From Amphiscolops sp. MND2022 (lineage: Eukaryota), in NCBI GenBank assembly GCA_964187785.1, contig OZ076412.1, positions 46,004,001-46,068,000 on the forward strand: 64,000 nucleotides of DNA. The letters are read 5' to 3'. Shown in pieces: positions 13,320 through 58,023 of the stretch (position 1 is its first letter; every line of letters starts with the position of its first letter). The notes below the pieces were generated by a model. It saw only the letters and a list, made by a program, of their open reading frames with translations, ran no database searches and had not been told where the DNA came from. A program made the translations under genes and the position numbers.

Positions 13320-13386
13320 ATTGGTGAAAGATAAGCCATGCCTGCTACGCAGCGCACGATAAGAAATGCTTGGCTGTATATATACG
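13320..13386 (+). promoter_or_regulatory. Putative LTR U3 promoter (reverse CCAAT box and TATA)
   Basis: ATTGG at 13320-13324 and TATATATA at ~13378, followed by a long pyrimidine tract. The same motifs occur in the 3' LTR. Confidence 0.5.
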
Positions 13387-13834
13387 GCCAACGCAGGCGA
13401 GGAGATTCACACACTTATTGAAAGGGACAGAGCTTAAACTTAAAAGCTCTCGTTTCTCTTCACTTCTCTTCCACTTCTCTCCCCTCACCCCTGCTCTTCT
13501 TTCTTACTTTACCCCCTTTCCTCTCCCTTTACTATTATCTTCCCCTTCAGACTTAGAAAGTCTATTTCTCGCCTTCACATTTCAATTCCGATTGCTATTT
13601 AACTCAACAAAACTTCTTGCTTAATAACTCAGATCCAATAATTCTCTTTTAATCATACCCTTGCATCTTAGAATATTTCTCCACTCATCCTTGATTTAAC
13701 TTCAACTTCCAGAACCAATCTTCCCTTACAAGAAATTTCTAACTTAGAAATTTCTCTTCAATTTCGTCTCCGGTTTGGTGAGTCTGACTATTTGGACCTT
13801 TCAGTAGAGATTTCACTCTCTCTGAGACTTTAAC

Positions 13835-14010
13835 TTAGACTATTTTCCGCTGATTTCAATTCTGCGGTTGACAAAATCTTAGAATATTTTCCGCTGATTT
13901 CAATTCTGCGGTTGACAAAATCTTAGATTATTTTCCGCTGATTTCAATTCGGCGGTTGACAAAATCTTACCTTAGACTATTTTCCGCTGATTTCAATTCT
14001 GCGGTTGACC
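13835..14010 (+). repeat. Four tandem 44-bp units inside the LTR (also at ~30168-30343)
   Basis: TTAGACTATTTTCCGCTGATTTCAATTCTGCGGTTGACAAAATC starting at 13835, 13879, 13923 and 13972. Confidence 0.92.
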
Positions 14011-14676
14011 AAACTATAGCTTAGACTATTCTTATTAGAACTAAATTTCTATGAGGTTGAAGTTACATAAACTCACATAAGAAAAGGGATGATTGAAGTT
14101 TTAAAGTGTCTTATTATGAAAAAGTCTTAATGCTATTCAACTTTCTACTGAATAGAGACATCTAAATCAAAACTCTTCCGTTTAAAATAGTACGGATTTG
14201 TAAATTTTGTTTGAGAAAAAGATTTCCGAAGAAAAAGGGAAATTCTTATTATTTGCAAATAGTTTCATTTTCATAAATGATAAATTGTAAAAGTTATATT
14301 ACTTCTTCTTGTAAAGTGAAGTTGTGATCTTTTATAATCTGAGATTTGTAACAATTGAAAGAAATATGGCTATGTCCAGAAGTTGTTCACTTTCAATATT
14401 CTCAACTCATTCGTAATTAAACATATTTATCCACCATACATTTTCAGTAAACGGGAAGCTCATTTACAAACACCGCCTTGCGCGACTCACGCAATTTCTT
14501 TTGTTCGCACGTACACGCAAGGCACCCCTTTATCAGTAAGTTGCTAATTTATTTGTTGGGACTTATACTTGTTAAATCAATAACAGAACCGTCGCGAGAT
14601 AGTACCTTGTAAAATGCAAACAAGGACTTGACAGATTAAAACTAATAAACAAATTTCACCCATGCGTGCGACAAAC

Positions 14677-14694
14677 TGGTGCGACCAGTGAGGC
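14677..14694 (+). promoter_or_regulatory. Primer-binding site (tRNA-Ile(UAU)-like)
   Basis: TGGTGCGACCAGTGAGGC starts 3 nt after the LTR end, and TGG complements the tRNA CCA. tRNA identity is from recalled similarity to TGGTGCTCCAGGTGAGGC. Confidence 0.8.
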
Positions 14695-15710
14695 TACTTT
14701 TTCTCTTGTAATAGAGAAGTAAATGAGCTATCTGTTAGAATCCCTACTCTCAGAAGTAAGGGTTACTTACTTATTTCTCTTAACATTACTTCTAATTTTC
14801 TTCTTTCTCCTACTGCCTCAATATGTGGCTTCTCTAATCTATATAAATCGTAAAACTGCTAGTAAATACTCTAACAGAATCTCTCCAGCCTAACAGCTTT
14901 GGGAAGAGTTTATGCACTACTCTCTTTCTTTCAATCCCCAAAACCATTTGTTAGAAATGATTTACCTTTACGAAAATACTATGAGATTACCATCAGTCCT
15001 AAACAAGAATGAAACTGACTCTATACGCTTTATTTAAAGGCACAGTTGGGAAATTCACTCTAGTCCGGACGGACACAAATTAAGTAAAAGCCCGCCTAGG
15101 TCTCCTCGGAGGCTGTTTGAAGGCCGTGAGCCCAGTGGGTATCTTGGAACCTATGTAGCATTCCGAGTGGGAAACCTAGTATTCTAGTGATAGTACCCAA
15201 GTGATTGCATGATAGTGATCTGGGCCCCACGCACTTAATCCTAAAGACGAGAGTAACTCCCTCTGTGAACTAGCCGTAGTTATTTTCCTAAAGTTAAAGA
15301 AAGGCTCAAAGAGCGGATGAAAGACCTAGTGGACTGACTGTACTCTTCATAGGTTTTCTTTGGGTTAACTCGGAGGATTGGTATACCCCGAACTACCCTT
15401 TTTACGATAATCTCAACACTACTGGGATTTGTAAGTATCCCCTAAACTGTGGAATCAGAGTACGAAATATAGGAAATGAGCCTAACTTCGACCGAGAAGT
15501 GCTATTTTCATTTTTGCTAGCAGCGTATTAAGGATTTTATGATTTGTCAGACCTGTCTAATAATTATCACTATTAGAATCATAGTACAAACAATTTTTAC
15601 TTTAACTCTTTGCTGTTATTCTCAAAAGCCAAGAGTATCATACCTCATAGAGTCTTTGGCTTATTGTTCTTTGCTTCATCTTCTATCCTTTATAATCTCA
15701 ATAGCTCACA

Positions 15711-17165
15711 ATGGCTGCGCAAAATTACTTGGCTTATCCAGACCTCGGCAGAGACCAATTCACAGGAACAGACCCAGATCAAGATCCTGAACAATTTATA
15801 CAGCTAATTGAAAAGAAGTTCCGTTTCTCTCATGGTGATACCCCAGCAAACGGAGCAGCACTTGACGACTACAACTTCAGGAGAAAATCCTACTTTGCTA
15901 CACTACTAAGAGGACCAGCAGCGGAGTGGTTCGAGACAAGTATCACAGACGCTAACACCTGGCAAGAAATCAGAGAAAGGTTCATCACAAGATTCGCAGA
16001 TGGCCGAAACAAATCCAGACACAGAATGGAAGCAGAGCATGTCACCAGAAGAGATGGAGAAGAGATAAAGAATTTTCTACACAGAATCAAAATTGTTGTG
16101 GGGAAAGGCTGGCCAGATGATCTTGCCGGCGTCGCACAAAACGACAGAAACGCAGAAAGAGCAGCACAAGACCGACAAAGAAGACAAAGGTGCATCGACT
16201 ACTCACTGAGAGGCCTAAGACCTCCAAAACTGAGAGAAAAGGCACACGAATATTTAATGGATCACCCGAATGCAACCTGGGAACAATTCTCCCAAGCTGT
16301 AATAAACAAAGACCTCTCCTACACGGTAACTACCGCCCTAACTGGCGGAGAATCACATTCAGACCCACTCATACAAGAAATGCGAGACGACCTGAAGGGA
16401 ATCAAACTACAAATCAAAGAACAGATGAATAACACAATCAACGCAGTAGAGAAAACTGTAGACCCTAATGCTACAGGTCGAAGAATGGCCACACGATTCT
16501 GTGGCTACTGCCGAACAAATGGGCACACACCTAACTGGTGCAGAAAGAAGATGAGAGATGAAGAAGTGAAGAAGGTTCAAAACGAAGCTAACCCAGAAAG
16601 AAGAATAACATTCACCAACGACTACAACAAAAGAACTGGACCTGAACATGGCTCTAGATTTCAACCAAGATTGCCAGATTCAGAAATCAGAAAACATATG
16701 GCTGTGGCACATCAACTAGCACTGGCTGGAGCTATGCAGTCAAACCCTGCCTGGAATCAATACGATAGACCACAAAGAAAAAATTTCAACCCAGAACGCC
16801 GACCTACGAATACAAGAGTCAATCCTGGTAACCAAAGATTTTCACAAGAAGGGAGAAGACCCTTCCTAAACAATTCTAACAACTCCAGAAGTGTTTCCCC
16901 TGGACCCCAAAGAGCAAGATCTCCGTTCAACTTCAACAGAGACCAGTCTAGCTCCTTTAATCGCAACATACAACCTCTTCCACCAAGAAATAACTCAGTT
17001 TTTCAAAGACCACTAGACAGAAACGAAAGACCCAACACTCCAACTCAATCTTACGAGCAAAGATTCCCAAAAACTAATGACATAGGAAGATCCAACACAG
17101 TACAGTTCTTAGAAACCGACTACTCGGTGAACTCTATTGCCGATTTCCGCCCTTTAAACTACTAA
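15711..17165 (+). CDS. gag: Gag (capsid-like domain, CCHC zinc knuckle, basic N/R-rich tail)
   Basis: 484-aa ORF with LLRGPAAEWF..W.EIRERFITRF retrotransposon-gag motif and CGYCRTNGHTPNWC = CX2CX4HX4C. Confidence 0.95.
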   Translation: MAAQNYLAYPDLGRDQFTGTDPDQDPEQFIQLIEKKFRFSHGDTPANGAALDDYNFRRKSYFATLLRGPAAEWFETSITDANTWQEIRERFITRFADGRNKSRHRMEAEHVTRRDGEEIKNFLHRIKIVVGKGWPDDLAGVAQNDRNAERAAQDRQRRQRCIDYSLRGLRPPKLREKAHEYLMDHPNATWEQFSQAVINKDLSYTVTTALTGGESHSDPLIQEMRDDLKGIKLQIKEQMNNTINAVEKTVDPNATGRRMATRFCGYCRTNGHTPNWCRKKMRDEEVKKVQNEANPERRITFTNDYNKRTGPEHGSRFQPRLPDSEIRKHMAVAHQLALAGAMQSNPAWNQYDRPQRKNFNPERRPTNTRVNPGNQRFSQEGRRPFLNNSNNSRSVSPGPQRARSPFNFNRDQSSSFNRNIQPLPPRNNSVFQRPLDRNERPNTPTQSYEQRFPKTNDIGRSNTVQFLETDYSVNSIADFRPLNY

Positions 17166-17242: not shown

Positions 17243-20200
17243 TCACAAAAAGATAGTGGCTTAGAAATCGAATTTCTACTAGACACTGGGGCAACATCTT
17301 CAATCATCAACTACAGGACCTTTAGAGAACTTTGCCGGTTTCAACAAGACCTAGAACTTAGTAGAAGCAATAACACAACACGGAACTACTCTGGGCAGAT
17401 CATCCCTATGATGGGATACATCACCCTCAAACTCTACTACGATTCCGATGGACAACATAACTTCCCATTAACAGTCTGGATAACAGAGATGAAAACCCAA
17501 AACCTCCTTGGAATGAATTTCTGCCAAGAACAAGTTAACAAAATACACTTTGATCTTCCTGGCATAGAACTCAAAAGACTTATAAATACTTTCTGCTATG
17601 GTAGCCTACAACTCAACAAATGTTACCCCTATATATCACAAATTCTCTCAGTCAGAATTCCTCACTCAATGTATATCGAACCAAAGACGACAAGATGTTA
17701 CAAATTCGCACCAGAAAACACTAATAACTCATTTCCTCCTGGATCTACGTTCCTACCGAACAGGAAGGCAGTTTCTACTGGACTTAACTTCATAAATGTC
17801 CTCTGCACACGATTTGAGAAGACTTTACCAATCGTCATGGAAAACAACAAAAACCATACAATCACCTTAGTAAAAGGAACTATCGGATACTCAATGCTTG
17901 ACGTATTAGACCAAGAAATTCCGAAATACCAAATTAGAAACCCGACAGAACTCGCATATGCTATCCTAAACGAAAACGAAGAATACAACGACTGTTTCCT
18001 ATTACACTCTACCATTCCTTCACAAGATATGAACGATTGCCTCAGAATAGAAGGAGGAAACTCGAAAACAATACTCAGCAGACCAGACCCTATCATCATC
18101 TTCGTCCCGGCCGACCTAAAGCCAGCCAAAGGCTTCTCAAAAGAAATCCTAACGAAAATACCTTCACTTAAGGATACATGCGCAAAACAGAAACCACAGA
18201 AAGGAGAAACCATACCCTACTGGGACGAAACTCTGAAACGATTTATATATGTTCTGATTACGAAAGCAAAATCAAAAGACAAGATTGACCCACAATTACT
18301 AGTTCAATCTCTCGAAACTCTAAAAGCACACGCCAAAATGAGCGGCATCAAAACTATATCCATGCTACGGGAAGCCTCAGAGCTAGAAGACTTCCAATGG
18401 CAAGACGTCACTCAACTCATTCAAGACGTATTTGCATACTCAGAAATACAACTCCGAATTTATACAAGAAACGAACTAGATGTCTATGCCATGACTACAA
18501 GAGGAGACCCCGAATACGTACTAGAAGATGAGATACAACAATTTTCCGAGCAATTTCATCTCAAACATAGAGAGTTGGAGACAGACTTCACGAGCGACGC
18601 AAAGTCCTGTCAACCACCCTGCGATGAGCAATTTAAAATCTTCAGGCCAAAAGAAGACAACGAACGGCTGATCGAGTACTACCTTCAGTATCAAAATAAG
18701 GAAGCAGTGCGATACATTAAAGAATTCGACTTTCGCTACTCAGACCTCACAGACGAAGAACTGGTTCTCCTAATAGACTTACTAATGGACGCAAGAGATG
18801 TATACTCCCAACACAAATTTGACGTAGGGAAAACCAGACAAAAATTTAACATTAAACTAGAACCTGGAGCAATTCTAAAGAGACAGAGACCCAGCAAAGT
18901 ACCACTTCACCTACGAGAAAAGCTAGAGAAACTACTCACACAACTCAAAGACGCTGACATCATCAGAGAAATGGGCGACGATGAAGAAATGGGATCCTTA
19001 TTTGTGAATCCTATTATACTACAACCAAAACATGACTATGTCAAGCTGATCATAGATGCGAGATATCTAAACTCGGTGACAGATCTAACAAATTATTCCT
19101 GGCCCTTAGAACCGATCCAAACCATAATGACACTAATAAATGGAAACATCTTCTCAGTAAGTGATCTCTCCTGTGCATTTCACCAAGTCCCATTAGACGA
19201 GCCCACGCAAAAACTCACCAGCTTCATCATTGGCGGAAAACAATACACCTTCACCAGGGGATTCTATGGACTCAAGGGATTACCAAGCTTCTTTAGTAGA
19301 ATGATGACTATCCACTTCGAACCCCTCATCAAAAGGAAACAGGCAATTACATACATCGACGACACGTTGATGCAAGCCAAAAACAAACAAGAAATGTTCA
19401 CGGTAATTCAAGAATACCATAACTTACTGCGGAAAGCCGGACTCAAGGCAGCACCAGATAAGACACTCTTCTTCTTAAGGAAAGTCAAGTTTTTGGGACA
19501 CGTGATAGCAGCCGAAGGAATACAACCCGTCGCAAAACGAGTAAAAGACCTACACAATCTCAAATCACCAAAGACCAAAACCGAAGTGAAAAGCTTCTTA
19601 GGAGCTTTGGGCTTCTATAGCTGCTACATCAAGAATCTTCATGTCGATAGTCGACCTTTTTACGAACTCACCAAGAAAGATACAAATTTTTGCTGGAACC
19701 AAGAACACGAAGACCTTTTCCAGGAAATAAAGAAAAGAATTACCGAAGACACAGTGCTCGCAATACCCTCGACAAAATACCCCTTTCACATACACGTCGA
19801 CTCGTCAAACGTTGGGACAGGATGTATCCTCATCCAACAATTCCCAGAAGGGAAACGGATCATTTCCTTCAACTCAAGAGTTTTCGCAAAGGAAGAACAA
19901 AAGATGTCCACACTACACAGAGAATTATGTGGCATAGTCTCAGCTCTTCAGACGTATGAACACTACATCATCGGATCTCCCTTCCCCATCTACCTATACT
20001 GCGATCACAAGCCGATTCTTTATCTCTGGGGAAGAAAGGGACAAATTTCACCCCGTTTTTTCAGGTACCAAGTAATTATATCTAAATTCCCGAACCTCAA
20101 GATAATTTGGACTCCAGGAAGCAACCTAGCCTTCCCTGATATACTCAGTCGAAACGTCTCCATCGAGGAACACAAGAAACATCAACTCAGTCACAAAGTC

Positions 20201-22663
20201 ATCCCAACTGACATACACTTTTTCGACGAACATGGAACCCAAGTACACTACAAAATCAAACACGAAGAAAATGAAGAGTCATCCAAGAACGACTTTTACC
20301 CCATCTTGTACGAGAAGGGAAAAGAACGGAAAGTACTTCATCTCCAAAATGATGGGAATAACTTCAAGGTTAACTCTATCTACGAGGAACCTAACCTGCC
20401 GAAAGTAGAGTCAGCACAGAGTTGCCTCGACGCTGGAAGAGAACTTGGAAAATTCGAAGAACTAAGAATCAGGTCAGGAACACGGGATAGCACTTCGGAT
20501 TTATCACAAAACACTTACAGCTCCATCAACAGTGATACGGATGACGAAGCCCTCACAGACAATCAGAGTCAAGAAATAAACGAGACCAACTACGAGCTCA
20601 ACACAGAAGATCCCATCGCACGTAACCCAAGTCTTCCCAAAAACGCGAAGGCAATAGAACACCTCGATCTACCTACAAATTCAACTGAAAAACAAAAGAC
20701 ACCAACACAGGAACTTGTCAGACAACTTGATAAACTATCCAAAGAAGTAGAACTAAACGTTACAACGATCTTACAAGAACAAATAAATGACCCGGTACTC
20801 AGCGTGGTCCGACAATGGGTAAGAACAGGAAACAAACCCGAACCAAAATCACCAGAGTTACAACACTCAAAAGGCCTCATGCGTTACTTTCAGGAATTCG
20901 ACAGATTATCTATAGAAGGCCAAGGAAACCTCCTTTGTTATAACGAGCCAACTGATGACCCAACAGACGAGAATCTGAGAATCTGTCTACCTCTCTCTCT
21001 ATTTTTAGCTTGCTTTCGTATGGGACATTACAACGACCTCGGCGGCCACATGGGAGCAGAAAAGACCTTCCTCAATGCTAAGAGATTTTACTACTGGCCA
21101 GGGATGCACAACTGGATCTGTGCCCTCACACAAGATTGTGTTAGCTGCCAATCTAACAAATCCAAACAACGGAGAAACAACGAAGTCCCACTGGAAGACT
21201 GCGAAACCGAAACTCAAGTATTCAGAACCATCCACATTGATCACAAAGGACCACTCAATCCTCCCAGTCGTGGAAATTCACATTGCCTTCTGATCATCGA
21301 CGCCTTCTCACGTTACCTGATGGCATACCCAGTCAGAGACACAGGAGCACAATCTACAATCAATGCGATGGAAAAATGGATTATGCACTATGGCATCCCT
21401 CAATCTATCGTACATGATAGAGGAACAGCTTTCGTGAACACTGAATTCGTCAATTGGACTAAAGAGTTTGGCATTACACTTCGACCAAGAACCGCACACT
21501 CACCCTGGACAAATGGCAAAGTAGAAACTCAAAATCAACACATTGCAAGATACTGGAGAAACTTCCTAAACGAATCAGGAAACAACTGGGCCCAACTAGC
21601 TGCCAAATTTGCATTCGCCCACAACACAAGCGTCAACTACACGACTGGAAAGACCCCCTACGAGATAGTGTTTTGCAATAAACCACAGATACCTATGAGT
21701 CTGAAGCTGGGACTCTACAGGAACAAAAACAAGAACTGCAAATCACAATTCTGTCAAGGATTACCTCCTCATTGCCATAGCGAAAACCAAGTCAAAAACG
21801 AACTACTAAATGGACTATTACGACCACAACTATCACAAAGCTTATTGGAACGAGAAACAGCCTTCAAAAAGGTCTACTCATCCACATATGAAAAGTGCAG
21901 AAAACAAACAGCTCAATCACACACCTACAGGAACAGATTTAAACTTGGGAACCACCTCAACATTGGACAAAAGGTTCTGCTAGAGAACCATCGAAAAGAC
22001 CTCTCCAAAAGCCAAAAACTCCAACAACTGCGACTAGGACCCTTTACGGTTACCAAACGAATTACAAATACAACTTACCAAATAATGGAAGATCAAAACC
22101 CCGAGAATCTCCGAACTGTACATAGGAACCATCTAATAGAATACTTCCCTAAAGAAGAAACACTCCCCCCTCTTATCGAAGAATACACTACTCCCCACCG
22201 TGGAGACACGGATTTTTATAACAATCTTGTCAAAGGAAGAATTGAACAACTTAATGTTTCAGGACCACAAAAACTCGGAGACCTCTGCATATTGCCAGTA
22301 CGGAATCAACAAAACCAAATACTTGCCCGCAAAAGAACGCAAACCCCCCAGAGCACAGACTCTGGTATCATCTCTCCAGAAAATCAGTTGTTGTCAACTC
22401 CCAAGACTCCCGATCAGCCTTCGACATCACATCCTCAAAACGCAGCAACCCCTATCCTGACGTTAACTCAACGTCAACCAACTCCAGCACCCCCAACTAA
22501 CACCCCGGCATCGTCTACCAAGTCAACGACTCCCTTGCAAGAGTTACGAAAGGCTGTTGCCCGCCAAATAGAGAGAAATCCACGTTATCAGCGAGCACAA
22601 CCCAATCAACCAGCACGACAGTCCATACTTCGTGAAAGGACTAGAATTGGTTACAAAGAATAA
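17159..22663 (+). CDS. pol: Pol: aspartic protease - dUTPase-like region - macrodomain - RT - RNase H - integrase
   Basis: FLLDTGATSSII upstream of the tracked ATG in the same frame. YIDD RT motif; DSS..ELCGI..CDHKP..DILSR RNase H; H-H-C-C plus IHIDH/VHDRG/KVE integrase; GPF motif. No internal stops. Confidence 0.97.
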   Translation, partial: LLRSPKNRNSSSAPLKFSLNLYYFAAGDSQKDSGLEIEFLLDTGATSSIINYRTFRELCRFQQDLELSRSNNTTRNYSGQIIPMMGYITLKLYYDSDGQHNFPLTVWITEMKTQNLLGMNFCQEQVNKIHFDLPGIELKRLINTFCYGSLQLNKCYPYISQILSVRIPHSMYIEPKTTRCYKFAPENTNNSFPPGSTFLPNRKAVSTGLNFINVLCTRFEKTLPIVMENNKNHTITLVKGTIGYSMLDVLDQEIPKYQIRNPTELAYAILNENEEYNDCFLLHSTIPSQDMNDCLRIEGGNSKTILSRPDPIIIFVPADLKPAKGFSKEILTKIPSLKDTCAKQKPQKGETIPYWDETLKRFIYVLITKAKSKDKIDPQLLVQSLETLKAHAKMSGIKTISMLREASELEDFQWQDVTQLIQDVFAYSEIQLRIYTRNELDVYAMTTRGDPEYVLEDEIQQFSEQFHLKHRELETDFTSDAKSCQPPCDEQFKIFRPKEDNERLIEYYLQYQNKEAVRYIKEFDFRYSDLTDEELVLLIDLLMDARDVYSQHKFDVGKTRQKFNIKLEPGAILKRQRPSKVPLHLREKLEKLLTQLKDADIIREMGDDEEMGSLFVNPIILQPKHDYVKLIIDARYLNSVTDLTNYSWPLEPIQTIMTLINGNIFSVSDLSCAFHQVPLDEPTQKLTSFIIGGKQYTFTRGFYGLKGLPSFFSRMMTIHFEPLIKRKQAITYIDDTLMQAKNKQEMFTVIQEYHNLLRKAGLKAAPDKTLFFLRKVKFLGHVIAAEGIQPVAKRVKDLHNLKSPKTKTEVKSFLGALGFYSCYIKNLHVDSRPFYELTKKDTNFCWNQEHEDLFQEIKKRITEDTVLAIPSTKYPFHIHVDSSNVGTGCILIQQFPEGKRIISFNSRVFAKEEQKMSTLHRELCGIVSALQTYEHYIIGSPFPIYLYCDHKPILYLWGRKGQISPRFFRYQVIISKFPNLKIIWTPGSNLAFPDILSRNVSIEEHKKHQLSHKVIPTDIHFFDEHGTQVHYKIKHEENEESSKNDFYPILYEKGKERKVLHLQNDGNNFKVNSIYEEPNLPKVESAQSCLDAGRELGKFEELRIRSGTRDSTSDLSQNTYSSINSDTDDEALTDNQSQEINETNYELNTEDPIARNPSLPKNAKAIEHLDLPTNSTEKQKTPTQELVRQLDKLSKEVELNVTTILQEQINDPVLSVVRQWVRTGNKPEPKSPELQHSKGLMRYFQEFDRLSIEGQGNLLCYNEPTDDPTDENLRICLPLSLFLACFRMGHYNDLGGHMGAEKTFLNAKRFYYWPGMHNWICALTQDCVSCQSNKSKQRRNNEVPLEDCETETQVFRTIHIDHKGPLNPPSRGNSHCLLIIDAFSRYLMAYPVRDTGAQSTINAMEKWIMHYGIPQSIVHDRGTAFVNTEFVNWTKEFGITLRPRTAHSPWTNGKVETQNQHIARYWRNFLNESGNNWAQLAAKFAFAHNTSVNYTTGKTPYEIVFCNKPQIPMSLKLGLYRNKNKNCKSQFCQGLPPHCHSENQVKNELLNGLLRPQLSQSLLERETAFKKVYSSTYEKCRKQTAQSHTYRNRFKLGNHLNIGQKVLLENHRKDLSKSQKLQQLRLGPFTVTKRITNTTYQIMEDQNPENLRTVHRNHLIEYFPKEETLPPLIEEYTTPHRGDTDFYNNLVKGRIEQLNVSGPQKLGDLCILPVRNQQNQILARKRTQTPQSTDSGIISPENQLLSTPKTPDQPSTSHPQNAATPILTLTQRQPTPAPPTNTPASSTKSTTPLQELRKAVARQIERNPRYQRAQPNQPARQSILRERTRIGYKE

Positions 22664-23220: not shown

Positions 23221-23916
23221 CTACTCAACCTCCAGGAAACCTCCCTTCTCTGCAAGTCGCCGCAGCTGAGCCGCCCGCTCCCCCATTGTCCACAATGAAT
23301 AGAGGCGGGTCCACTGACCCCTCTCAAAACTAGTCAGCTGCGAGTAGCCACTTATGTAGGCTCGCAGCTGGAAGACGACTATTTCGCCGAGAGAGGACAG
23401 GAGAGTCTGCTCCCAACGGGCCCCCCAGTTAGCCCGCAAGAAACTAGTTAGAGCATTTGGACCGGGAGGCCCAGAAACAGAAAACCCGGGGGTACCCTGA
23501 AGGGAACTAGTTAATGAAGCCCAGTTTTCTAGGCGGTCGATATCCCTATGGGTAAATAAACCCATAAAACTTTGATCCCCCGGGCTCTCCAAAACACCCT
23601 GCGAGATGGTAGAGGGAGCTTGCGGAAAAGGGCCACTAGTCCTCGGGGCCACAAACGCCACAAAAGACCCACCCCCAGAGGTCCCTGCCTGAGAACCTGA
23701 TGACGAGGGAGCAGAAGAACTGGTGCGCGCTCCGCTCGACGAGGACGGCCCAGCTGACGACGACGATTGTGGCGGCAAAGAGGTAGCGGCAGTGCCCGAC
23801 ACAGACCCTGGAGCAGTAGTCTCCTCATCGGTCGAGGATTCTTCGTAATAGTCGCTATAGTTGTTGTTGTTGTTGTTGCTCATCCCTAAATACAAATTTG
23901 ATTTACTTAAAGTCAT
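23221..23916 (-). CDS. Antisense accessory ORF (S/G-rich N-terminus, helical W-rich C-terminus)
   Basis: 231-aa ORF in a GC-rich island that contrasts with the A/C-rich element. Minus-strand AATAAA at ~23087-23092 downstream of the stop. Confidence 0.7.
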   Translation of the reverse strand: MTLSKSNLYLGMSNNNNNNYSDYYEESSTDEETTAPGSVSGTAATSLPPQSSSSAGPSSSSGARTSSSAPSSSGSQAGTSGGGSFVAFVAPRTSGPFPQAPSTISQGVLESPGDQSFMGLFTHRDIDRLENWASLTSSLQGTPGFSVSGPPGPNALTSFLRANWGARWEQTLLSSLGEIVVFQLRAYISGYSQLTSFERGQWTRLYSLWTMGERAAQLRRLAEKGGFLEVE

Positions 23917-24157
23917 GCAAAATGTTTATAATTATTGATTGAAGTCAACCATATATGTATCACTATTCAACTTAGTCATCAGATATAAAATATAATATCC
24001 TACCCGGACATTTGTCTAGTTTACTACGACGACTCATGAAGTCGTAATCCTCTCTCCTCTACAAACACCCCCAAAAACGCAATGAAATAACTGATGATTC
24101 CATTCTCAGATTTGCTATGTTTGATGCACACACGCCACAAGGCATAACAGCTCACTG

Positions 24158-24379
24158 ATGATCATAATATTCAAAATTGACAACAGACTTTCCCAGATAA
24201 CTGATATTCAGAAGGAACCCTCAACACAGAACATAATCATACAAGCCTACGCAATCGCAGAAGAAGAGAGTGAAACCTACACGTGTGTGCCAGCATCACC
24301 TATCTACCCACTACTGGAGAGTCTACTATATAATAACACACCTACCGAAGTCTTCACAAGAGCCAAGTCAGTCCTTTAA
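24158..24379 (+). CDS. Accessory ORF B (73 aa), unknown function
   Basis: ATG overlaps an upstream TGA (TGATG). Stop overlaps the next start (TAATG). Confidence 0.65.
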   Translation: MIIIFKIDNRLSQITDIQKEPSTQNIIIQAYAIAEEESETYTCVPASPIYPLLESLLYNNTPTEVFTRAKSVL

Positions 24380-24774
24380 TGTCCTCTCCCGCAGTTGCCG
24401 TATTTCGAGGAAATAAGTACTACTTCCACACTCAATTTCAACCTCCGGTTCCTTGGAAACCTATACAACTCACGGGTGAATACGAAATACAGTCAATCTT
24501 TTACGAGATCACTACCTCGGCGATACAAGTCCGTATACTCACACCAGAAGACAAAGAAGCACTAGTCCTCTTCCCTATTCACTTCGGGTCCAAGGAATAC
24601 GCCTACCTATTCCTATCGTTCCAACAATACATACTCCAACACCCCGCTGTCCTTAAAGACAAGGCTTTCGACGACTTGGTTTATTTTATGGATATCACCC
24701 TAGTAACTAACCCCTTTGAAGAAGAGGTTAGAATCAAATATCTTCACACCCTAGTTGAGACCTATGATGTTTAA
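24379..24774 (+). CDS. Accessory ORF C (131 aa), unknown function
   Basis: TAATG-coupled ATG, element-like codon usage, stop overlapping the start region of ORF D. Confidence 0.75.
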   Translation: MSSPAVAVFRGNKYYFHTQFQPPVPWKPIQLTGEYEIQSIFYEITTSAIQVRILTPEDKEALVLFPIHFGSKEYAYLFLSFQQYILQHPAVLKDKAFDDLVYFMDITLVTNPFEEEVRIKYLHTLVETYDV

Positions 24775-25108
24775 AATACAACTCAAATTCCTCTGGCGTC
24801 ACCCGGAAACAAACACACTTCTTGAGATCCTCTCTATAGCCTGGAAAGAGAGCGCCCCCGCACTTCAGATTGAACTCCACAGCCTCCGACCACATCAAAC
24901 GGGACATTGGCTCATCCCTGTCGCAACAGACTCGACAGAAGCAGCAGATCTTGCGAAGGCGCTAACCGACTACAGGGAGATCGCTTACTTAGATCACGTT
25001 CACCCTCTGACCCTTCATCTCCTCAGCAAGCTAATCGATTTCCTCGACGCTCAGAGACGTAACAAACGCTCTCCCAGTCTAAAATCAATCAGTGATAACT
25101 ACAGCTGA
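24764..25108 (+). CDS. Accessory ORF D (~114 aa), unknown function
   Basis: ATGATG at 24764 overlaps the end of ORF C. The track's 24755 start is a TTG. Confidence 0.72.
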   Translation: MMFKIQLKFLWRHPETNTLLEILSIAWKESAPALQIELHSLRPHQTGHWLIPVATDSTEAADLAKALTDYREIAYLDHVHPLTLHLLSKLIDFLDAQRRNKRSPSLKSISDNYS

Positions 25109-25166
25109 ACCTTCACAGATGGTTGAAGTTAGTTTCTTTTACTATTTTTCTTCAGGCACTCTTTGA

Positions 25167-25588
25167 ATAGTAGTGAGGTTACTACTATAAAATTTTAACC
25201 TCCGCTTAGTGTCGTGCCAGCTAAGCTGCCGGTTTGATATTACGGCTTGCCTTTTTACGGCCTTATTTCAGGATCCATAACATTAAACTAAACTAAAAGA
25301 CAAATAAACTTCTCCTTCTCTTAGGTACGTGTGAACAGTAGTGAGGTTACTACTATAAAATTTTAACCTCCGCTTAGTGTTGTACCAGCTAAGCTGCCGG
25401 TTTGATATTACGGCTTGCCTTTTTACGGCCTTACTCCGAAACCTATACTTTAAACAAAAAACAACAATCTTTCCATAAGGCACTTTCCAATAGTAGTGAG
25501 GTTACTACTATAAAATTTTAACCTCCGCTTAGTGTCGTGCCAGCTAAGCTGCCGGTTTGATATTACGGCTTGCCTTTTTACGGCCTTA
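25167..25588 (+). ncRNA. Three near-identical 99-nt structured units separated by unrelated 69- and 56-nt spacers
   Basis: Copies at 25167-25265, 25335-25433 and 25490-25588. Stems and a pseudoknot were predicted by eye. The repeat is certain; an RNA function is inferred. Confidence 0.7.
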
Positions 25589-25656
25589 CCGTGGATCCAC
25601 ATATCTATAAAAAACATTTTTCCTGATTGATTGTCAAAGACTGAAGAATTTCAAAA

Positions 25657-27804
25657 ATGAAATTATTTTACTTACTCTTTTTATGCGCCCATTACGCGCC
25701 CGTTGTGATATTACAACGTCCAACGCCAAACCTCGCTAGCGTTGCTAAAAAACTGCGAGTAACTCATTTCGACTGCGGCGAAATGACCCAAAATAAACTC
25801 TACGCATTGAATCAAGTTGAACAATGCAATGTGGCACCTGAAAACTTAGAGGTAAGTCGTGCGAGCGTAACGTTATACACTAAACATTTCCGCCGCACTA
25901 TCAACGCCACTATGTGCCGTGTGAAACATCAGAGTGAAGAATGGCATTGTGGTTATCACGACCACTCCAGTATGTCAATCCTACACGACGGAATCACCAG
26001 CGATCTTTCCCTGTCACCCGAAACCTGCAAGGCAATGGGTGAAGGCAAAGAAGTCATAATCCATGGACAACCCCTCAAATTTAAGAAAGGAGTGAAACAA
26101 GTACAGACGAGAAACGCCAAATACGGAAAGAGTTGGGACGGTGTACGCGACCCAGATACCCGAAATGAATGCAAGACAGGTGGCTGGATCAAAAGAGAAA
26201 CATTCGAATCTCACATCCAAGATGCTGAATTATCAGTAAAAACTCGAGATGGAAAAGTCCTGACTCCGTTTCAGATGGTCCTTCCCTGCCCCTTAGAACA
26301 ACTAGGTTGCGAAACGACGTCACTGGACCCATACGCCTACACATGGGCGGAGCCCGATAATTGCGTGCTTGCAGTACATAGGAAAGAAATCGTGAACATG
26401 ATCAAACACGGATCTAACTACTATATTGTAAGCGGCAACGACTCCACTACCAAATTTTTATTCGAAGTCTACAACAGACCACAAAAGTATTGCAACAAAC
26501 CAGACGATGTATACCCGACCAACTACGAATCCCTGTACGTTTCAATCCAACTTGGTGGCTTCGACATGACGTCCGGCAGACGACTAGGCATCTCCATGGG
26601 AGAGACATCTAAACTACAATATTATTCACCCGAAGATGGTTCTGGTAATGGCCGACTCCACCTCTTTCGAGGCCCGAGCGACCCCAACCCTAATACACCT
26701 CATTACCTCAACATGGATTACGAGTTACACCAAGGGACAAAGCTTGATTATCTCTTCTTTGAGAGCACTCGTCTCCTCGAAGCTTCAGAAATCCAGCTCC
26801 TCAAAGCACAATGCGAACAAGAAAGAACTCAAATCCTTACTATTTTGATGCTATCAATGGAAAATCCTCGCCTCGCCGGATACATGCTCACGGGAAATCG
26901 CTCAATGTTCCTGAACACAGATGGCAGCCTCGCTTGGCTCTACCACTGTCCGGAATCCCACTCACCTCTTCACACGATGAACCGATGCTACGACCGCATA
27001 CCCATCTTCTACAAAGGAGTGGTTGCCTTCGTGGACCCAATCACCCGACAGACCTATCCTAACGCGAACGCCCAAAATTGCAGCGATCGCATTAAGAACC
27101 TCTTTCAATTGGATATGGAAGACAAAGACTCCTGGTTTACCCTCACTCCTTCACCCGAACATCGCGACCGACCTGCTATCTTCGGACCCAAAGACATACA
27201 ACCAATGATTACTAGATCCTTCCCTGGTTCACAAGACGCGGGAATGTATACGCCTAAACAACTCTCAGAATTTTGGGACAACATCCTCATCAGCGCAGCG
27301 TCTCGCAACGCCCTCCAGAAGTTCTCACGAGAGCTCATCACACCCTCAATGGCCCATAGTGGACCTGAATCTTTCGCGTATTATGCACCCCGTACAGATT
27401 TTTATGTTGACGGCATGATCTCACCCGATTACTTCAAAAATCAGTTCCTTGAAACATTTGGAAGTATATCTTACGTACTAGAACTCTGCGGCGCGTATTT
27501 TGGCGCCTTTCTTTTCATTAAGTTCGTAATAGATATCACGGTACTCGTCTTCCGATACTTTGAACTTCGTCACCTCACAGGTAATACACTGAGCTTCACT
27601 AAAACATTGCTCAGTGCTTCGTACAATCTTTTCTTTACTTCAGTCTTAACTTCTGTATTCACCCCGCGGGCCCCTTACGAGGATAGCGTTGAAGATAAAA
27701 ACGCGAAAACTGAAGATAATGGAAAAGAAGTAGAACTCCAAGCACTGAAGAATAAGGAAGAATCACTTTATCCCTCAGTACAGAGCTTCGTAGCTCCAAT
27801 ATAA
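25657..27804 (+). CDS. env: Envelope glycoprotein, class III fusion (chuvirus G / herpes gB-like) family
   Basis: 715 aa with signal peptide and C-terminal TM segment. Cys pattern HFDC..QVEQC, CRV..HCGYHDH, CEQER..L, LYHC, CYDRIP..FVDPITR..NC matches the recalled chuvirus-like glycoprotein pattern. Confidence 0.88.
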   Translation: MKLFYLLFLCAHYAPVVILQRPTPNLASVAKKLRVTHFDCGEMTQNKLYALNQVEQCNVAPENLEVSRASVTLYTKHFRRTINATMCRVKHQSEEWHCGYHDHSSMSILHDGITSDLSLSPETCKAMGEGKEVIIHGQPLKFKKGVKQVQTRNAKYGKSWDGVRDPDTRNECKTGGWIKRETFESHIQDAELSVKTRDGKVLTPFQMVLPCPLEQLGCETTSLDPYAYTWAEPDNCVLAVHRKEIVNMIKHGSNYYIVSGNDSTTKFLFEVYNRPQKYCNKPDDVYPTNYESLYVSIQLGGFDMTSGRRLGISMGETSKLQYYSPEDGSGNGRLHLFRGPSDPNPNTPHYLNMDYELHQGTKLDYLFFESTRLLEASEIQLLKAQCEQERTQILTILMLSMENPRLAGYMLTGNRSMFLNTDGSLAWLYHCPESHSPLHTMNRCYDRIPIFYKGVVAFVDPITRQTYPNANAQNCSDRIKNLFQLDMEDKDSWFTLTPSPEHRDRPAIFGPKDIQPMITRSFPGSQDAGMYTPKQLSEFWDNILISAASRNALQKFSRELITPSMAHSGPESFAYYAPRTDFYVDGMISPDYFKNQFLETFGSISYVLELCGAYFGAFLFIKFVIDITVLVFRYFELRHLTGNTLSFTKTLLSASYNLFFTSVLTSVFTPRAPYEDSVEDKNAKTEDNGKEVELQALKNKEESLYPSVQSFVAPI

Positions 27805-27850
27805 AGCCAAAAACATTTTCAAGTTCATTCATTCATTAGTTTACTTTTAG

Positions 27851-28432
27851 AATCTAGAACCACTATTCGACCTACCAAGCCTGGACGACGATACCCTGGA
27901 TCCTATCCCAGAAAGTGACCTAGAAATCGAACCCCTATCTCCTTCAGACTTTTTGACACCAGACTCGTCTACAACAATTACCTTCCTTCCCGACCCCCCC
28001 GACTCAACGGTCCCATCATCACCCTCAAAATCTCCAACTCCAACCTTCACACCAACGCCATCCGACCAACTCCCCTTTCCTTTGTCATTCACAGGAGACA
28101 TACCACCAATCCCGTCAACACAACATCCTCCTAGATTTGGTGGAAAGGACATCAGAAGAACCACACCACAAAAACACTATCATGAATGGAACAACGAGAT
28201 AGCCGATGAAGCACCCTTACATAACCAACATAAAAGGGAATACTTCACTAGAAAAGCCAGATACGTTAAAAAACCTAGGTTTAACGCAAACCTAAAGTAT
28301 TCTCTACTCCCACAGTTTTCAACCTGGAAAATCGTCTTTTGGGACAACAAAAGACAAGAATACACTATTGAGAACCCTGCACTGAAGGGACAGCGGCTGA
28401 CAGTTCCCTTAAGATCCATATCTGCACAATGA
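27851..28432 (+). CDS. ATG-less accessory exon (acidic, P/S/T-rich, then basic), probably spliced
   Basis: Frame opens immediately after ttcattcattagtttacttttag| and is open for 193 codons. Stop overlaps the next ATG (ATGA). Confidence 0.7.
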   Translation, partial: NLEPLFDLPSLDDDTLDPIPESDLEIEPLSPSDFLTPDSSTTITFLPDPPDSTVPSSPSKSPTPTFTPTPSDQLPFPLSFTGDIPPIPSTQHPPRFGGKDIRRTTPQKHYHEWNNEIADEAPLHNQHKREYFTRKARYVKKPRFNANLKYSLLPQFSTWKIVFWDNKRQEYTIENPALKGQRLTVPLRSISAQ

Positions 28433-29367
28433 GCAAAAAATTAAACCCAAATGCCACCCCCTTCATCCCAAAACACAAACCCTACCTACCGATCCCTAAC
28501 CCCGACTGGCCACCTATGCCTGAAGAAAACGATCAAGAAGAACATGCAAACCTCGAAGGAGTGGAAAGACTAAATATGTGGATTAGTGAATGGGAGAAAT
28601 CAACTAGTACCTATAACCAGGGAACAAAAAGCACACCGCTTCGAAAGTCCTTCCCTTTAACGGACATTAATCAACCCCAAAAGAAGTTAGAAAACCGAAT
28701 CAAACTGCTATGTACCTCAATCGAAGAGGCACGAGATAAACGTCAACAATTGGAAGTCACTATCTTCGATTTGCGAGCGACAATCAAACACCAAAGCTCC
28801 CTCCTCAGCAGAGCGAGCCAGATTGAAGCGAACGGTAAAGATTTTATCACTTGGCAAGTTTCCGCCTTCTCCACACTTTACCGAAAAGCAAGGACCTCTC
28901 CAGACGATCCCTTTCACAACATCAAAAACAGCTTCGCGAGCCCTATTTACCCAACATACCTATCAGGCTGCAAAATTTCCTTCAGAATATTCCCTTACGG
29001 GATAAACATCTTCCGTGGGACCCACTCTTCTATTAGCTGTGAACTTCATTATAGCGACTTCACTCACCCACAAACATGGCCCTTTGATAAAACAGTAGAA
29101 GTCGAAATACTTGATCAGAAGGACGAAGGCAACAAGTGGTCCACACTTTTCCCAATCAACCCCCACAACCACGAAGATACCCTTCACAATCTCTACACGC
29201 ACCCGAACCTCCTCAAAGAAGACTTCATCCCTCATACGAAGTTACTTGTCAACTTCAGAGAAGCATTCCTAAACAATGACTCTATAATATTTAGAATCAA
29301 ATTTAAGGAACCTTCCCCTCAGTCACTCGCGCTACATAACTCCCCCTTCTTTCAGTCTGACCCATAA
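28429..29367 (+). CDS. PAM2 motif + coiled coil + TRAF-C/MATH domain protein
   Basis: LNPNATPFIP at the N-terminus. ITWQV, SPIY, GTHSS, WPF, ILDQ and FLNNDSIIFRI match TRAF-C motifs. No RING or zinc fingers. Confidence 0.87.
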   Translation: MSKKLNPNATPFIPKHKPYLPIPNPDWPPMPEENDQEEHANLEGVERLNMWISEWEKSTSTYNQGTKSTPLRKSFPLTDINQPQKKLENRIKLLCTSIEEARDKRQQLEVTIFDLRATIKHQSSLLSRASQIEANGKDFITWQVSAFSTLYRKARTSPDDPFHNIKNSFASPIYPTYLSGCKISFRIFPYGINIFRGTHSSISCELHYSDFTHPQTWPFDKTVEVEILDQKDEGNKWSTLFPINPHNHEDTLHNLYTHPNLLKEDFIPHTKLLVNFREAFLNNDSIIFRIKFKEPSPQSLALHNSPFFQSDP

Positions 29368-29404: not shown

Positions 29405-31006
29405 TGTCGCGTTATGACTAACGCTTTAACAAACATAATTAGGTGCTAAAGTGCAGTTTATATTTAATTAACAAATAAAGAAACAAACATGAACTAGAAC
29501 TAACGTTTGTTTATGGGGGAGAAAGTTGTAGATGAAGATGGCGGCCATAACGATGGTAATAATGATGATGAAGTACTGTGACGAGAAAGGAATTGCACAA
29601 GTGAAGAATTCTATATTATACCGCGTATATTTGAAATATGAAACCAACTATGATTGGTGAAAGATAAGCCATGCCTGCTACGCAGCGCACGATAAGAAAT
29701 GCTTGGCTGTATATATACGGCCAACGCAGGCGAGGAGATTCACACACTTATTGAAAGGGACAGAGCTTAAACTTAAAAGCTCTCGTTTCTCTTCACTTCT
29801 CTTCCACTTCTCTCCCCTCACCCCTGCTCTTCTTTCTTACTTTACCCCCTTTCCTCTCCCTTTACTATTATCTTCCCCTTCAGACTTAGAAAGTCTATTT
29901 CTCGCCTTCACATTTCAATTCCGATTGCTATTTAACTCAACAAAACTTCTTGCTTAATAACTCAGATCCAATAATTCTCTTTTAATCATACCCTTGCATC
30001 TTAGAATATTTCTCCACTCATCCTTGATTTAACTTCAACTTCCAGAACCAATCTTCCCTTACAAGAAATTTCTAACTTAGAAATTTCTCTTCAATTTCGT
30101 CTCCGGTTTGGTGAGTCTGACTATTTGGACCTTTCAGTAGAGATTTCACTCTCTCTGAGACTTTAACTTAGACTATTTTCCGCTGATTTCAATTCTGCGG
30201 TTGACAAAATCTTAGAATATTTTCCGCTGATTTCAATTCTGCGGTTGACAAAATCTTAGATTATTTTCCGCTGATTTCAATTCGGCGGTTGACAAAATCT
30301 TACCTTAGACTATTTTCCGCTGATTTCAATTCTGCGGTTGACCAAACTATAGCTTAGACTATTCTTATTAGAACTAAATTTCTATGAGGTTGAAGTTACA
30401 TAAACTCACATAAGAAAAGGGATGATTGAAGTTTTAAAGTGTCTTATTATGAAAAAGTCTTAATGCTATTCAACTTTCTACTGAATAGAGACATCTAAAT
30501 CAAAACTCTTCCGTTTAAAATAGTACGGATTTGTAAATTTTGTTTGAGAAAAAGATTTCCGAAGAAAAAGGGAAATTCTTATTATTTGCAAATAGTTTCA
30601 TTTTCATAAATGATAAATTGTAAAAGTTATATTACTTCTTCTTGTAAAGTGAAGTTGTGATCTTTATTAATCTGAGATTTGTAACAATTGAAAGAAATAT
30701 GGCTATGTCCAGAAGTTGTTCACTTTCAATATTCTCAACTCATTCGTAATTAAACATATTTATCCACCATACATTTTCAGTAAACGGGAAGCTCATTTAC
30801 AAACACCGCCTTGCGCGACTCACGCAATTTCTTTTGTTCGCACGTACACGCAAGGCACCCCTTTATCAGTAAGTTGCTAATTTATTTGTTGGGACTTATA
30901 CTTGTTAAATCAATAACAGAACCGTCGCGAGATAGTACCTTGTAAAATGCAAACAAGGACTTGACAGATTAAAACTAATAAACAAATTTCACCCATGCGT
31001 GCGACA
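29405..31006 (+). repeat. 3' LTR (1602 bp)
   Basis: Starts TGTCGC right after the PPT and ends GCGACA, followed by the TSD CAAT. Confidence 0.97.
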
Positions 31007-50379: not shown

Positions 50380-50461
50380 TAATTGCAGTCAAATGTGTTT
50401 TTTTAAGGTTTGTTTTTGCATTTGCGTTTCGTCAGCGTTACATTGTTATTTCTATATTTTT

Positions 50462-51890: not shown

Positions 51891-52784
51891 TCTACGAATC
51901 TCCCTCCGCCTAAAAATAAAGACATCGTTCAGTTTTTGGAAGCGTTGCTTGCAGAAGAACTACATGTTCGGCAAATATTTTGTTGACGTTTTCTTGTTCA
52001 GTTTCCCAAACTGTCACTTGGTGTAGTTTCAAATTTGGGTGTCTCTTTTCCGGATACAATTATTGTTTTCTCGAAAATTTCCGAGACTAGACACTAGCAA
52101 AATTATTGAACTTTATTTCAGTTCAATTTTTGTTGTGATTACGAGTGCGTACTGAAAAAGTCAGATATTTTGTTCGGCAGTAAGTATAAGCGTGAGATTT
52201 AAATTTCTCAAGCAGCCGACAACAATTCGTTTCTCGTGCGATGGAACGAGCGAGTGGTAATTATGCTTTCGTACGCCGAGTTATTGCGGTGGAATGAACG
52301 AGTGTGAATTATTTGTTCGCCGAGAGCTTCGCCTGCATTCAAATGCGAATGCGAAACATCGTCTACGCTTAGTAGTTATATTTTCGTTAGTCCGAGAAGA
52401 ATTAAAGGCGGTGTAAACTGGTAGTGATTAATTATATGTTATATAAATGATTAAGGTATGCTTCTATTAATGAACATGAAACCCTAAAAGCAACAACACT
52501 GTGCCCCGCAATGGCCTATTTTGTTATTACGTCCCTCAAATCACGAAGTTTTTTGTCTGCCAGTGTGAAAAGTCCTGGCCTTTAAAAGGTAGTTGAAATA
52601 CTTCGATTTATGGAAAAATACAAAAGCTTTTGCTTTTCCGGACTGTTTAGGCTGTCCTTTCTCTTCGTTTTGAGCACTTTCTGAGGTGAAATTTTATCAG
52701 ATGGCCTTTACGCGAATTGTTGTGACATCAACACAAATTTAGGTGTCTAGAAACACAAATTAGTAAATACCGTCGTCATTTGTC

Positions 52785-57642: not shown

Positions 57643-57644
57643 GT

Positions 57645-58005
57645 TTAGCGTGAAATGTTTGTGAAAATGTCTCTGCGCGAACGGTTGTTTATGTTGGTGG
57701 ATTTTGTAGGAATGAATCTGCGCGTTCTCTTGCTATCGCCACCTAGTTGTTTTCTCAACGTCTTTTTGCCAACACTTGGTACAGCCGATTTTAAATATTT
57801 CTTTCCACTAATTATTTCTGCCATTTCAGGTACAGCATATTCCAACAAGTCAGCTTCAACTCTTCGTGCAGCTGGGACGATAAATTTTTTAAACAAAAGG
57901 AACTGCGGTTCTCCCAATACCTTGAGCAAGTGCTCCAAATAATCTTCCTCGTTGTCTTGTCACTCCTCTATAATACGGTAGTTCAAGTTCTCTTGAGGCA
58001 ACCAT
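57645..58005 (-). pseudogene. Polinton small basic core-like protein (copies at 59996 and 62347)
   Basis: R/G-rich start LPYYRG..QRGR, then KKFIVPAARRVGADLL and a basic C-terminus. Frameshifted. Confidence 0.65.
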
Positions 58006-58023
58006 CTCGCACAGTGTTTATTG

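Follow-up and report, generated by a model that had tools for sequence, protein, structure and literature searches.

A covariation-supported, pseudoknot-capable RNA module repeated upstream of env in a Ty3/gypsy element from Amphiscolops sp.

Two kinds of cis-acting element work on unspliced retroviral RNA, the direct repeats (DR) found in Rous sarcoma virus and, in simian type D retroviruses, the constitutive transport element (CTE), and the effect of both grows with the number of copies present. The tax/rex messenger RNAs (mRNAs) of deltaretroviruses, for their part, borrow a start codon from a mini-exon located just before env. The present analysis concerns a set of tandem, putatively structured RNA units found just upstream of the env gene of an env-carrying Ty3/gypsy long terminal repeat (LTR) element from Amphiscolops sp. 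MND2022. The window, meaning the whole stretch of DNA that was analyzed, comprises 64,000 nucleotides (nt) of the forward strand (assembly GCA_964187785.1, contig OZ076412.1, positions 46,004,001 to 46,068,000). Env-carrying Ty3/gypsy elements of non-insect animals have recently been surveyed as "ancient errantiviruses" (eLife 2026, PMC13524379), and the words splicing, tandem repeat, and pseudoknot are absent from the text of that survey. Taken together, the comparative data identify each unit as a predicted pseudoknot-capable RNA module of the plus strand that is repeated and kept by selection. The units would constitute an RNA family absent from Rfam that resides in a known kind of element, and the job of the unit is probably of a known kind, performed by a new architecture.

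Three direct copies of a unit of ~100 nt (~110 nt when an upstream pentamer is included) are present, and env starts 68 nt past the third copy (Table 1). As claimed in an earlier reading of this DNA made from the letters alone (hereafter the sequence-only reading), the copies are nearly identical: within a core of ~99 nt, copies 1 and 3 are the same and copy 2 differs at three positions, with one additional difference in the upstream pentamer. The core changes of copy 2 fall, again as claimed, in the loop of the second, or middle, hairpin, with one further change creating ACAGTAGT in the first stem. All of the proposed parts were recovered at their places, namely the first hairpin (ATAGTAGT/ACTACTAT) with its GAGGTT loop, the linker AAAATTTT, the strand AACCTC, the hairpin GCTTAG/CTAAGC, the GCCG-loop-CGGC hairpin, and the T5 run. 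The comparison of the GCCG/CGGC hairpin to a T-arm is not supported, as ARAGORN reported 0 tRNA-like genes in the window. The first stem is preceded, at a distance of 7-8 nt, by a conserved pentamer, GGCAC or GGTAC, and the few bases that join pentamer and stem vary at most positions among the window copies. The A-rich spacers, described initially as unrelated, are not wholly so, with an identity of 34/57 that amounts to a marginal likeness (z = 1.9), and GGATCCA occurs 3' of both copy 1 and copy 3. This marginal likeness, together with the shared GGATCCA, indicates that the duplicated block was longer than the unit and that the spacers have since decayed while the units were kept. The constancy of the cores beside drifted linkers and spacers thus points to islands held constant within a duplicated block.

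The unit is also found outside of the window. Loci were fetched around relatives of env, of which 280 were found, and JGI metagenomes were scanned with an exact pattern. Nine further units were identified in seven related elements, always between the small open reading frame (ORF) pair and env, giving a total of 12 units at 8 loci from three samples, with a copy number of 1-3 per element. The metagenome pattern scan returned only two copies, both located before env, on contigs from a Cyphastrea coral metagenome, and exact-pattern scans of IMG/VR and of GTDB genomes yielded 0 matches each, as did a search of IMG/VR with env. The unit is absent from L004, L007, L008, L009, L013, and L014; L008 is 5'-truncated, beginning just past the cassette, and L009 is rearranged. 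Where the unit is present, it is better conserved than its surroundings: the window unit and unit C of L002 share 91% identity, while env reaches 70% and the region of the upstream ORF 67%, and the corresponding values for L003 are 83% for the unit and 65% for env. Such a pattern, in which the units are more conserved than coding sequence, argues that they are under selection.

Covariation among these units provides the principal evidence for the fold. Pairs were counted on a model-fitted alignment of 12 units and 24 pairs (A5), with a check on a MAFFT alignment that was not fitted to the structure. In A5, 93.4% of cells are paired and 10/24 pairs display both-sided change. The observed covariation score was reached by 0/500 shuffles, controls in which the partners were slid fall to 20-58% paired, and the MAFFT alignment gives nearly the same result. 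A comparison across related elements, proposed by the sequence-only reading as a means of checking its fold, therefore supports a structured RNA. The pseudoknot helix (A5 columns 9-14 with 31-36) is 98.5% paired, with covariation in 5/6 of its pairs, and its strands occur as GAGGTT/AACCTC, GAGATT/AATCTC, GAAGCT/AGCTTC, GGAGCT/AGCTCC, and GTAGCG/TGCTAC. Pairing between the loop and a strand outside of the hairpin, the defining property of an H-type pseudoknot, has thus been kept in evolution. The middle hairpin is formed in 12/12 units from quite different sequences, the 3' hairpin shows one compensating G-C to A-U change, and the six core pairs of the first hairpin are invariant in 12/12 units. 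Class 2 units (Table 1) lack one base of the 3' strand of the first hairpin, and a shifted register using an upstream AG is possible; in this register three bases stay unpaired ahead of the loop strand, a geometry better suited to a pseudoknot. G-U pairs are found in the plus sense only, and the folded strand is therefore that of the mRNA. The predicted module thus begins with a short pseudoknotted hairpin and an A/U-rich linker, continues with a middle hairpin that is free to vary in sequence, and closes with a small 3' hairpin, clamped by G-C pairs and invariant in its loop, and a U-rich tract.

A second pseudoknot may involve the upstream pentamer, as GGCAC can pair with GUGCC in the loop of the middle hairpin in 10/12 units. 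In copy 2 of the window the combination of GGTAC and GTACC represents a compensating double change, such that two of the four differences of this copy form one pair; by a rough estimate the chance of such a coincidence is ~1%, for what is a single event. In place of this pairing, the sequence-only reading had closed the unit with a helix between AGGYA and TGCCT. That helix is present in the window, but it is not conserved, TGCCT is missing from most relatives, and GGCAC/GTGCC (GGTAC/GTACC in copy 2) pairs better. A candidate third pairing, of the A/U linker with the loop of the 3' hairpin, was dropped as an AU-rich chance match, and a P4-like hairpin in the env signal region (25697-25716) was seen in the window only and is probably due to chance.

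Comparison to described RNA families indicates that the unit is new. Rfam was searched at the gathering threshold over the whole window, yielding no match, and with cmscan at E <= 10 over 24900-25800, where only a chance match to DUF805b was returned (11 bits vs a gathering threshold of 35.6 bits). At E <= 10 no ribozyme family (hammerhead, hepatitis delta virus-like, twister, twister-sister, pistol, hatchet), known exoribonuclease-resistant RNA (xrRNA), or known internal ribosome entry site (IRES) was matched. The suggestion of an undescribed cis-acting structured RNA is consequently upheld by covariation and by the lack of an Rfam match, whereas the more specific identities put forward with it, a microRNA cluster, a tRNA-like gene, or a known family of self-cleaving ribozyme, Xrn1-resistant RNA, or IRES, are not. 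A microRNA cluster of the type found in bovine leukemia virus or foamy viruses, transcribed by RNA polymerase III (Pol III), is excluded by the longest stem, which at 8 base pairs (bp) falls short of the ~20 bp needed for RNAs of ~22 nt. The internal A and B boxes of type 2 Pol III promoters are matched in part and by eye only, and class 2 units have another sequence in place of the B-box-like loop. In 12/12 units the 3' hairpin is followed within 12 nt by four or more consecutive T residues, which can be read equally well as a pyrimidine tract.

The sequence ahead of the first unit contains what appears to be a mini-exon, made up of a start codon, two further codons (Met-Val-Glu in all), and the pattern of a 5' splice site. 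The motif ATG-GTN-GAR|GTNAG is shared by the window, L003, L005, L006, L010, and L012 with variation at third codon positions only, and in L002, a seventh locus, the codons differ but both ATG and donor are retained. The mini-exon lies past the point where the small upstream ORF terminates, and the first GGCAC comes 20-30 nt further on. Left unspliced in the window, it opens a short ORF of 15 codons, which terminates at 25166 and so abuts the first stem of unit 1. At five loci (the window, L002, L003, L005, and L006) a strong putative splice acceptor directly follows the env stop, and an ORF of 193-236 codons lacking Met, here termed ORF-X, opens at the first base past it. The C-terminal ~70 amino acids of ORF-X are conserved and basic; the protein has no Pfam match, and a search for homologues found 2 proteins. 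A phase-0 junction between the mini-exon and ORF-X would probably yield Met-Val-Glu fused to ORF-X. As these donor and acceptor signals are common to the relatives, we infer an intron reaching from 25128 to 27850 that would hold both the cassette and env, being spliced out of an accessory mRNA and retained in env mRNA and genomic RNA. Among the options listed by the sequence-only reading, a splice or expression cassette for env therefore comes nearest, in that the cassette follows a conserved, putatively alternative 5' splice site within a region predicted to be retained in env mRNA. The AG|G seen after a pyrimidine tract was also offered as a 3' splice site; it does precede 3/3 window copies, but relatives read TG|GCAC and the site is not conserved. 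Joining the mini-exon ATG to acceptor-like sites near the units always leads to an early stop, so that an N-terminal extension of env by this route was rejected.

The stretch that connects the mini-exon to env is devoid of start codons. In the window, 0 ATG triplets separate the start codon of the mini-exon from that of env, where mononucleotide shuffles predict 8.8 and a dinucleotide-aware estimate 4.5. The count is likewise 0 in L002, L003, L005, L006, and L012 and 1 in L010, tests that are not independent given that the loci are related. In control non-coding regions of the window element, observed and expected numbers of ATG agree. The start codon of env stands in a strong -3 context, that of the mini-exon in a weak one. 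Together these data suggest that the stretch is a leader crossed by scanning ribosomes on their way to env. Freedom from ATG implies that the cassette would be scanned within a capped env leader, which argues against a cleaved or uncapped product.

Table 1. Positions in the window (or loci, where related elements are concerned) of the units, their parts, and other features of the element.
Feature	Position	Strand	Remarks
Unit 1	25155-25265	+	GGCAC 25155-25159; tail end 25265
Unit 1, first hairpin (P1)	25167-25174 with 25181-25188		ATAGTAGT/ACTACTAT
Unit 1, pseudoknot helix	25175-25180 with 25197-25202		loop GAGGTT with AACCTC; linker AAAATTTT 25189-25196
Unit 1, middle hairpin	25204-25209 with 25221-25226		GCTTAG/CTAAGC; loop holds GTGCC 25214-25218
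Unit 1, 3' hairpin	25228-25231 with 25243-25246		GCCG with CGGC; T5 run 25252-25256
Unit 2	25324-25433	+	anatomy as unit 1; GGTAC 25324-25328, GTACC 25382-25386; ACAGTAGT in first stem
Unit 3	25479-25588	+	core identical to unit 1
A-rich spacers	25266-25323 and 25434-25478		
Units of L002			three abutting units (A, B, C); env 75% identical
Units of L003, L011			one unit each; class 1
Units of L005, L006, L010, L012			one unit each; class 2, different linker and 3' loop
Mini-exon (putative)	25119-25127	+	ATG GTT GAA, then 5' splice-site-like GTTAGT 25128-25133
ATG-free stretch, donor to env start	25128-25656	+	holds three units and A-rich spacers
ORF-X	27851-28432	+	193 codons, no Met; opens at first base after acceptor (pyrimidine tract, TTTTAG to 27850)
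5' LTR	13058-14673	+	self-BLAST 99.0% identity to 29405-31006; TG...CA ends
gag	15711-17165		element ORF
pol	17408-22663		reverse transcriptase, RNase H, integrase; Ty3/gypsy order
Two small overlapping ORFs	24379-24774 and ~24764-25108		upstream of env
env	25657-27804	+	715 amino acids, open; Pfam PF24664 Monjiviricetes_fusion (viral fusion glycoprotein), E 4.5e-33
MATH/TRAF-like domain ORF	28429-29367	+	312 amino acids; Pfam PF22486 E 2.4e-9, PF21355 E 2.6e-8
3' LTR	29405-31006	+	self-BLAST partner of 5' LTR

The reading tentatively favored here, to which we assign somewhat less than an even chance, is that the units constitute a protein-binding cis element of the env leader and retained intron, similar in kind to the Rev response element (RRE), the CTE, and the DR. 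The units would be present in genomic RNA and, as an ATG-free leader, in env mRNA, and would be absent from fully spliced accessory mRNA. As repeated docking sites they would recruit an RNA-binding protein of the host or of the element, and the bound protein would set the fate of RNA left unspliced at the local donor, either by holding back the donor, by licensing env and genomic RNAs that keep the intron for export and use, or by both means, with the copy number tuning the strength of the effect. It is distinctly doubtful that the binding protein is encoded by the element itself: ORF-X, possibly together with the MATH-domain protein, might bind the pseudoknotted units and so release env and genomic RNAs, providing an axis like that of Rev and RRE from outside the vertebrate retroviruses, in which case the differing module types of sister lineages could reflect co-evolution.

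Several observations weigh against the favored reading, beginning with the structure itself. The invariance of the first hairpin leaves covariation silent on it either way, and the second pseudoknot depends upon one compensating event and is missing in units A and B of L002. Folding energies speak only weakly for the unit (z = -1.3 in the one examined), and the minimum free energy structure prefers another fold of the middle and 3' hairpins, one that lacks the backing of covariation; the case for the fold is made by the comparative evidence. The binding protein is postulated, and ORF-X has neither a family match nor a good AlphaFold model (predicted local distance difference test score of 50). 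The splice model, for its part, is read from signals in the DNA. The units have strong acceptor-like sites on either side, and env mRNAs free of the cassette are therefore possible. Moreover, in L007, L013, and L014 a donor-like motif lies after the modules, so a retained-intron logic would not be universal in the family.

Other explanations have been considered. An unlikely one is that the units act in translational control, the env leader containing a calibrated barrier or spacer that ribosomes reach by leaking past the mini-exon ATG or by rescanning after the short ORF, with ribosome shunting and an IRES as variants. Pararetroviruses, which are relatives of Ty3/gypsy elements, use a short ORF combined with a stable structure for shunting, and the leader described here is free of ATG up to env, presents a weak ATG context at the mini-exon and a strong one at env, and contains a conserved short ORF (5-15 codons) that ends shortly before the cassette, its stop in the window abutting the first stem. 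A region that is shunted or IRES-driven, however, has no need to be free of ATG, the env ATG follows the last unit at anything from ~15 to ~110 nt, invariant loops and pseudoknots exceed the needs of a mere stability element, and Rfam holds no IRES that matches. Improbable, in our estimation, is a packaging or dimerization signal marking the genomic RNA that keeps the env intron for binding by Gag. Such a role would fit multi-copy hairpins with invariant loops, the self-complementarity of the linker TAAAATTTTA, and the inferred restriction of the units to RNA unspliced at the local donor; yet env mRNA would carry the same signal, signals of this type usually reside in the 5' leader, and the palindrome TAAAATTTTA is absent from class 2 units. 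Comparably improbable is that each unit is a processed RNA that generates a subgenomic RNA end upstream of env, whether by resisting exoribonuclease or by cleaving itself as a new ribozyme. Ribozymes are common in retroelements. Tandem copies and a double-pseudoknot topology speak for such a product, and a 5' strand that pairs into a downstream loop is reminiscent of xrRNAs; against it stand the lack of any Rfam ribozyme or xrRNA match, the uncapped state of such a product in the face of a stretch to env that is as free of ATG as a scanned leader, and the position of the 5' strand, which ranges from 13 to >160 nt from the first stem across elements and is missing in two units.

Still less probable is a Pol III small-RNA cassette, in which each unit would be a transcript of its own that terminates at the T run. 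That run is found after every 3' hairpin, a TATA-like TTTATAAAAAT lies ~26 nt before the unit in L003, L005, L006, and L011, and A-box-like and B-box-like strings are visible by eye, but the window and L002 units lack a TATA, L010 and L012 have a changed version of the TATA-like string, and class 2 does not keep the B-box-like loop. In addition, stems of at most 8 bp exclude microRNA precursors, ARAGORN offers nothing in favor of such a gene, the two copies of the JGI scan, both before env, do not behave as a dispersed small-RNA gene or short interspersed nuclear element, and the avoidance of ATG in the spacers would be left unexplained. The least probable explanation by a wide measure is a recent tandem duplication that is neutral and without function, the outcome that the sequence-only reading had named as its own refutation. 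The near identity of the three window copies would be expected from it, and the LTRs are 99% alike and the insertion therefore young, but the unit occurs at 8 loci from three samples and with compensatory changes, it is conserved above the level of coding sequence, and the spacers have decayed where the units have not; conservation of the unit above env and covariation together exclude it.

The element in which the units reside is intact-looking and 17.9 kb in length, and all of its ORFs in the window are open, with no breaks seen. It is flanked by a 4-bp target duplication, CAAT, read at its ends, and a primer-binding site of the transfer RNA type directly follows the 5' LTR. The env protein traces to an ENA metagenome assembly, and sequence searches of the PDB with env and with the two small upstream ORFs returned no match. 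The MATH/TRAF-like ORF is also found in L005, L006, L007, L010, L013, and L014, and its conservation in six or more relatives gives it the look of a domain captured from the host; its N-terminus is weakly PAM2-like. The ATG of ORF-B lies a few bases ahead of the ORF-A stop (24764-24774), and the stop of ORF-X overlaps the ATG of the MATH ORF (AATGA, 28426-28432), both arrangements recurring in L002 and L003; the two junctions have the layout of putative termination-reinitiation coupling. Between pol and the small ORFs, a serine-rich antisense ORF of 231 amino acids (23221-23916, minus strand) lacks a Pfam match, and antisense ORFs were called at the equivalent place in L003, L005, L006, and L007. 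A non-coding block of 41 nt (24079-24119) retains 90-95% identity in L003, L005, L006, and L010, for which env is only ~55% identical at the protein level; it ends in TTCTCAG, is followed by a conserved ATG, and may be a shared splice acceptor. Each LTR holds five tandem copies of a 44-49-nt repeat (13790-14067; 30123-30400). The sequence AGTGAGGCTACT, just inside the primer-binding site (14685-14697), has a 12-nt match to the first stem and loop of L002 unit B (L002 3873-3886), and it matches the window units with one mismatch, a likeness that could be due to chance. Outside of the element, the window contains an ORF of the long interspersed nuclear element type with endonuclease and reverse transcriptase (47569-50388, minus strand), a 445-bp tandem array (52776-54476), and a 2351-bp tandem array that runs to the window end (57506-64000).

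Additional structured repeats occupy the same region in related elements. In class 1 and class 2 relatives, GGCAC and the unit are separated by 1-4 copies of another hairpin (L003 2735-2805; L005 2795-2880; L006 2690-2850; L010 3800-3895), in which a bulge divides the outer stem from an inner stem of CCGG type capped by a TTTTAGT loop, with covarying stems, and which is followed by TTTATAAAAAT and the palindrome CGACGTCG or CCACGTGG. Sister lineages that lack the unit carry other tandem, covarying hairpin modules before env (L007 2700-2900; L013 3390-3600; L014 2940-3680), as exemplified by GCTAG-TGGTG-CTAGC beside GCTGG-TGGTG-CCAGC, several of them preceded by a pyrimidine tract and CAG|G. 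The modules of the sister lineages and the extra hairpins of the relatives thus suggest that modular, fast-changing, structured repeats are a family trait of the region preceding env.

If the units do act as a binding platform for intron-retaining RNA, the logic of complex vertebrate retroviruses would be older, or more easily evolved, than has been assumed. The locus offers a covariation-backed RNA family, sequence evidence that env is bracketed by alternative splice sites and that a start codon is borrowed, and a leader seemingly shaped for scanning ribosomes, and the motif itself is a compact natural candidate for a double pseudoknot that lends itself to structural study.

Among known systems, the tandem xrRNAs of the flavivirus 3' untranslated region resemble the units in being duplicated with spacers and in pairing a 5' strand to an internal loop and a hairpin loop to a downstream strand; they differ in the order of their helices, in belonging to families that Rfam does not match here, and in that the window units precede a coding ORF that apparently requires cap-dependent scanning. 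The pregenomic leader of the pararetroviruses, across which ribosomes shunt, likewise has a short ORF that ends just before a strong structure and a long ORF that begins soon after, but shunted leaders are full of ATGs where the window leader has 0, and the window structure is modular and constrained in sequence. The DR and CTE share with the window the presence of structured units of ~100 nt that occur in multiple copies, the intervening sequence being unrelated, although they are located downstream of env and are stem-loops with internal loops rather than pseudoknots. The lentiviral RRE, to which the units show no sequence or Rfam likeness, forms one branched domain inside of env, in contrast to the discrete, repeated, pseudoknotted modules found upstream of it here, in a Ty3/gypsy element for which a Rev-like protein is hypothetical. 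Even so, the RRE and like elements of other complex retroviruses are structured, multi-site RNAs that lie in the intron of accessory mRNAs and are kept in env and genomic RNA, as the units are predicted to be, and the window element, as do the complex retroviruses, appears to possess small accessory ORFs reached by splicing, one of which would borrow its start from a mini-exon located before env.
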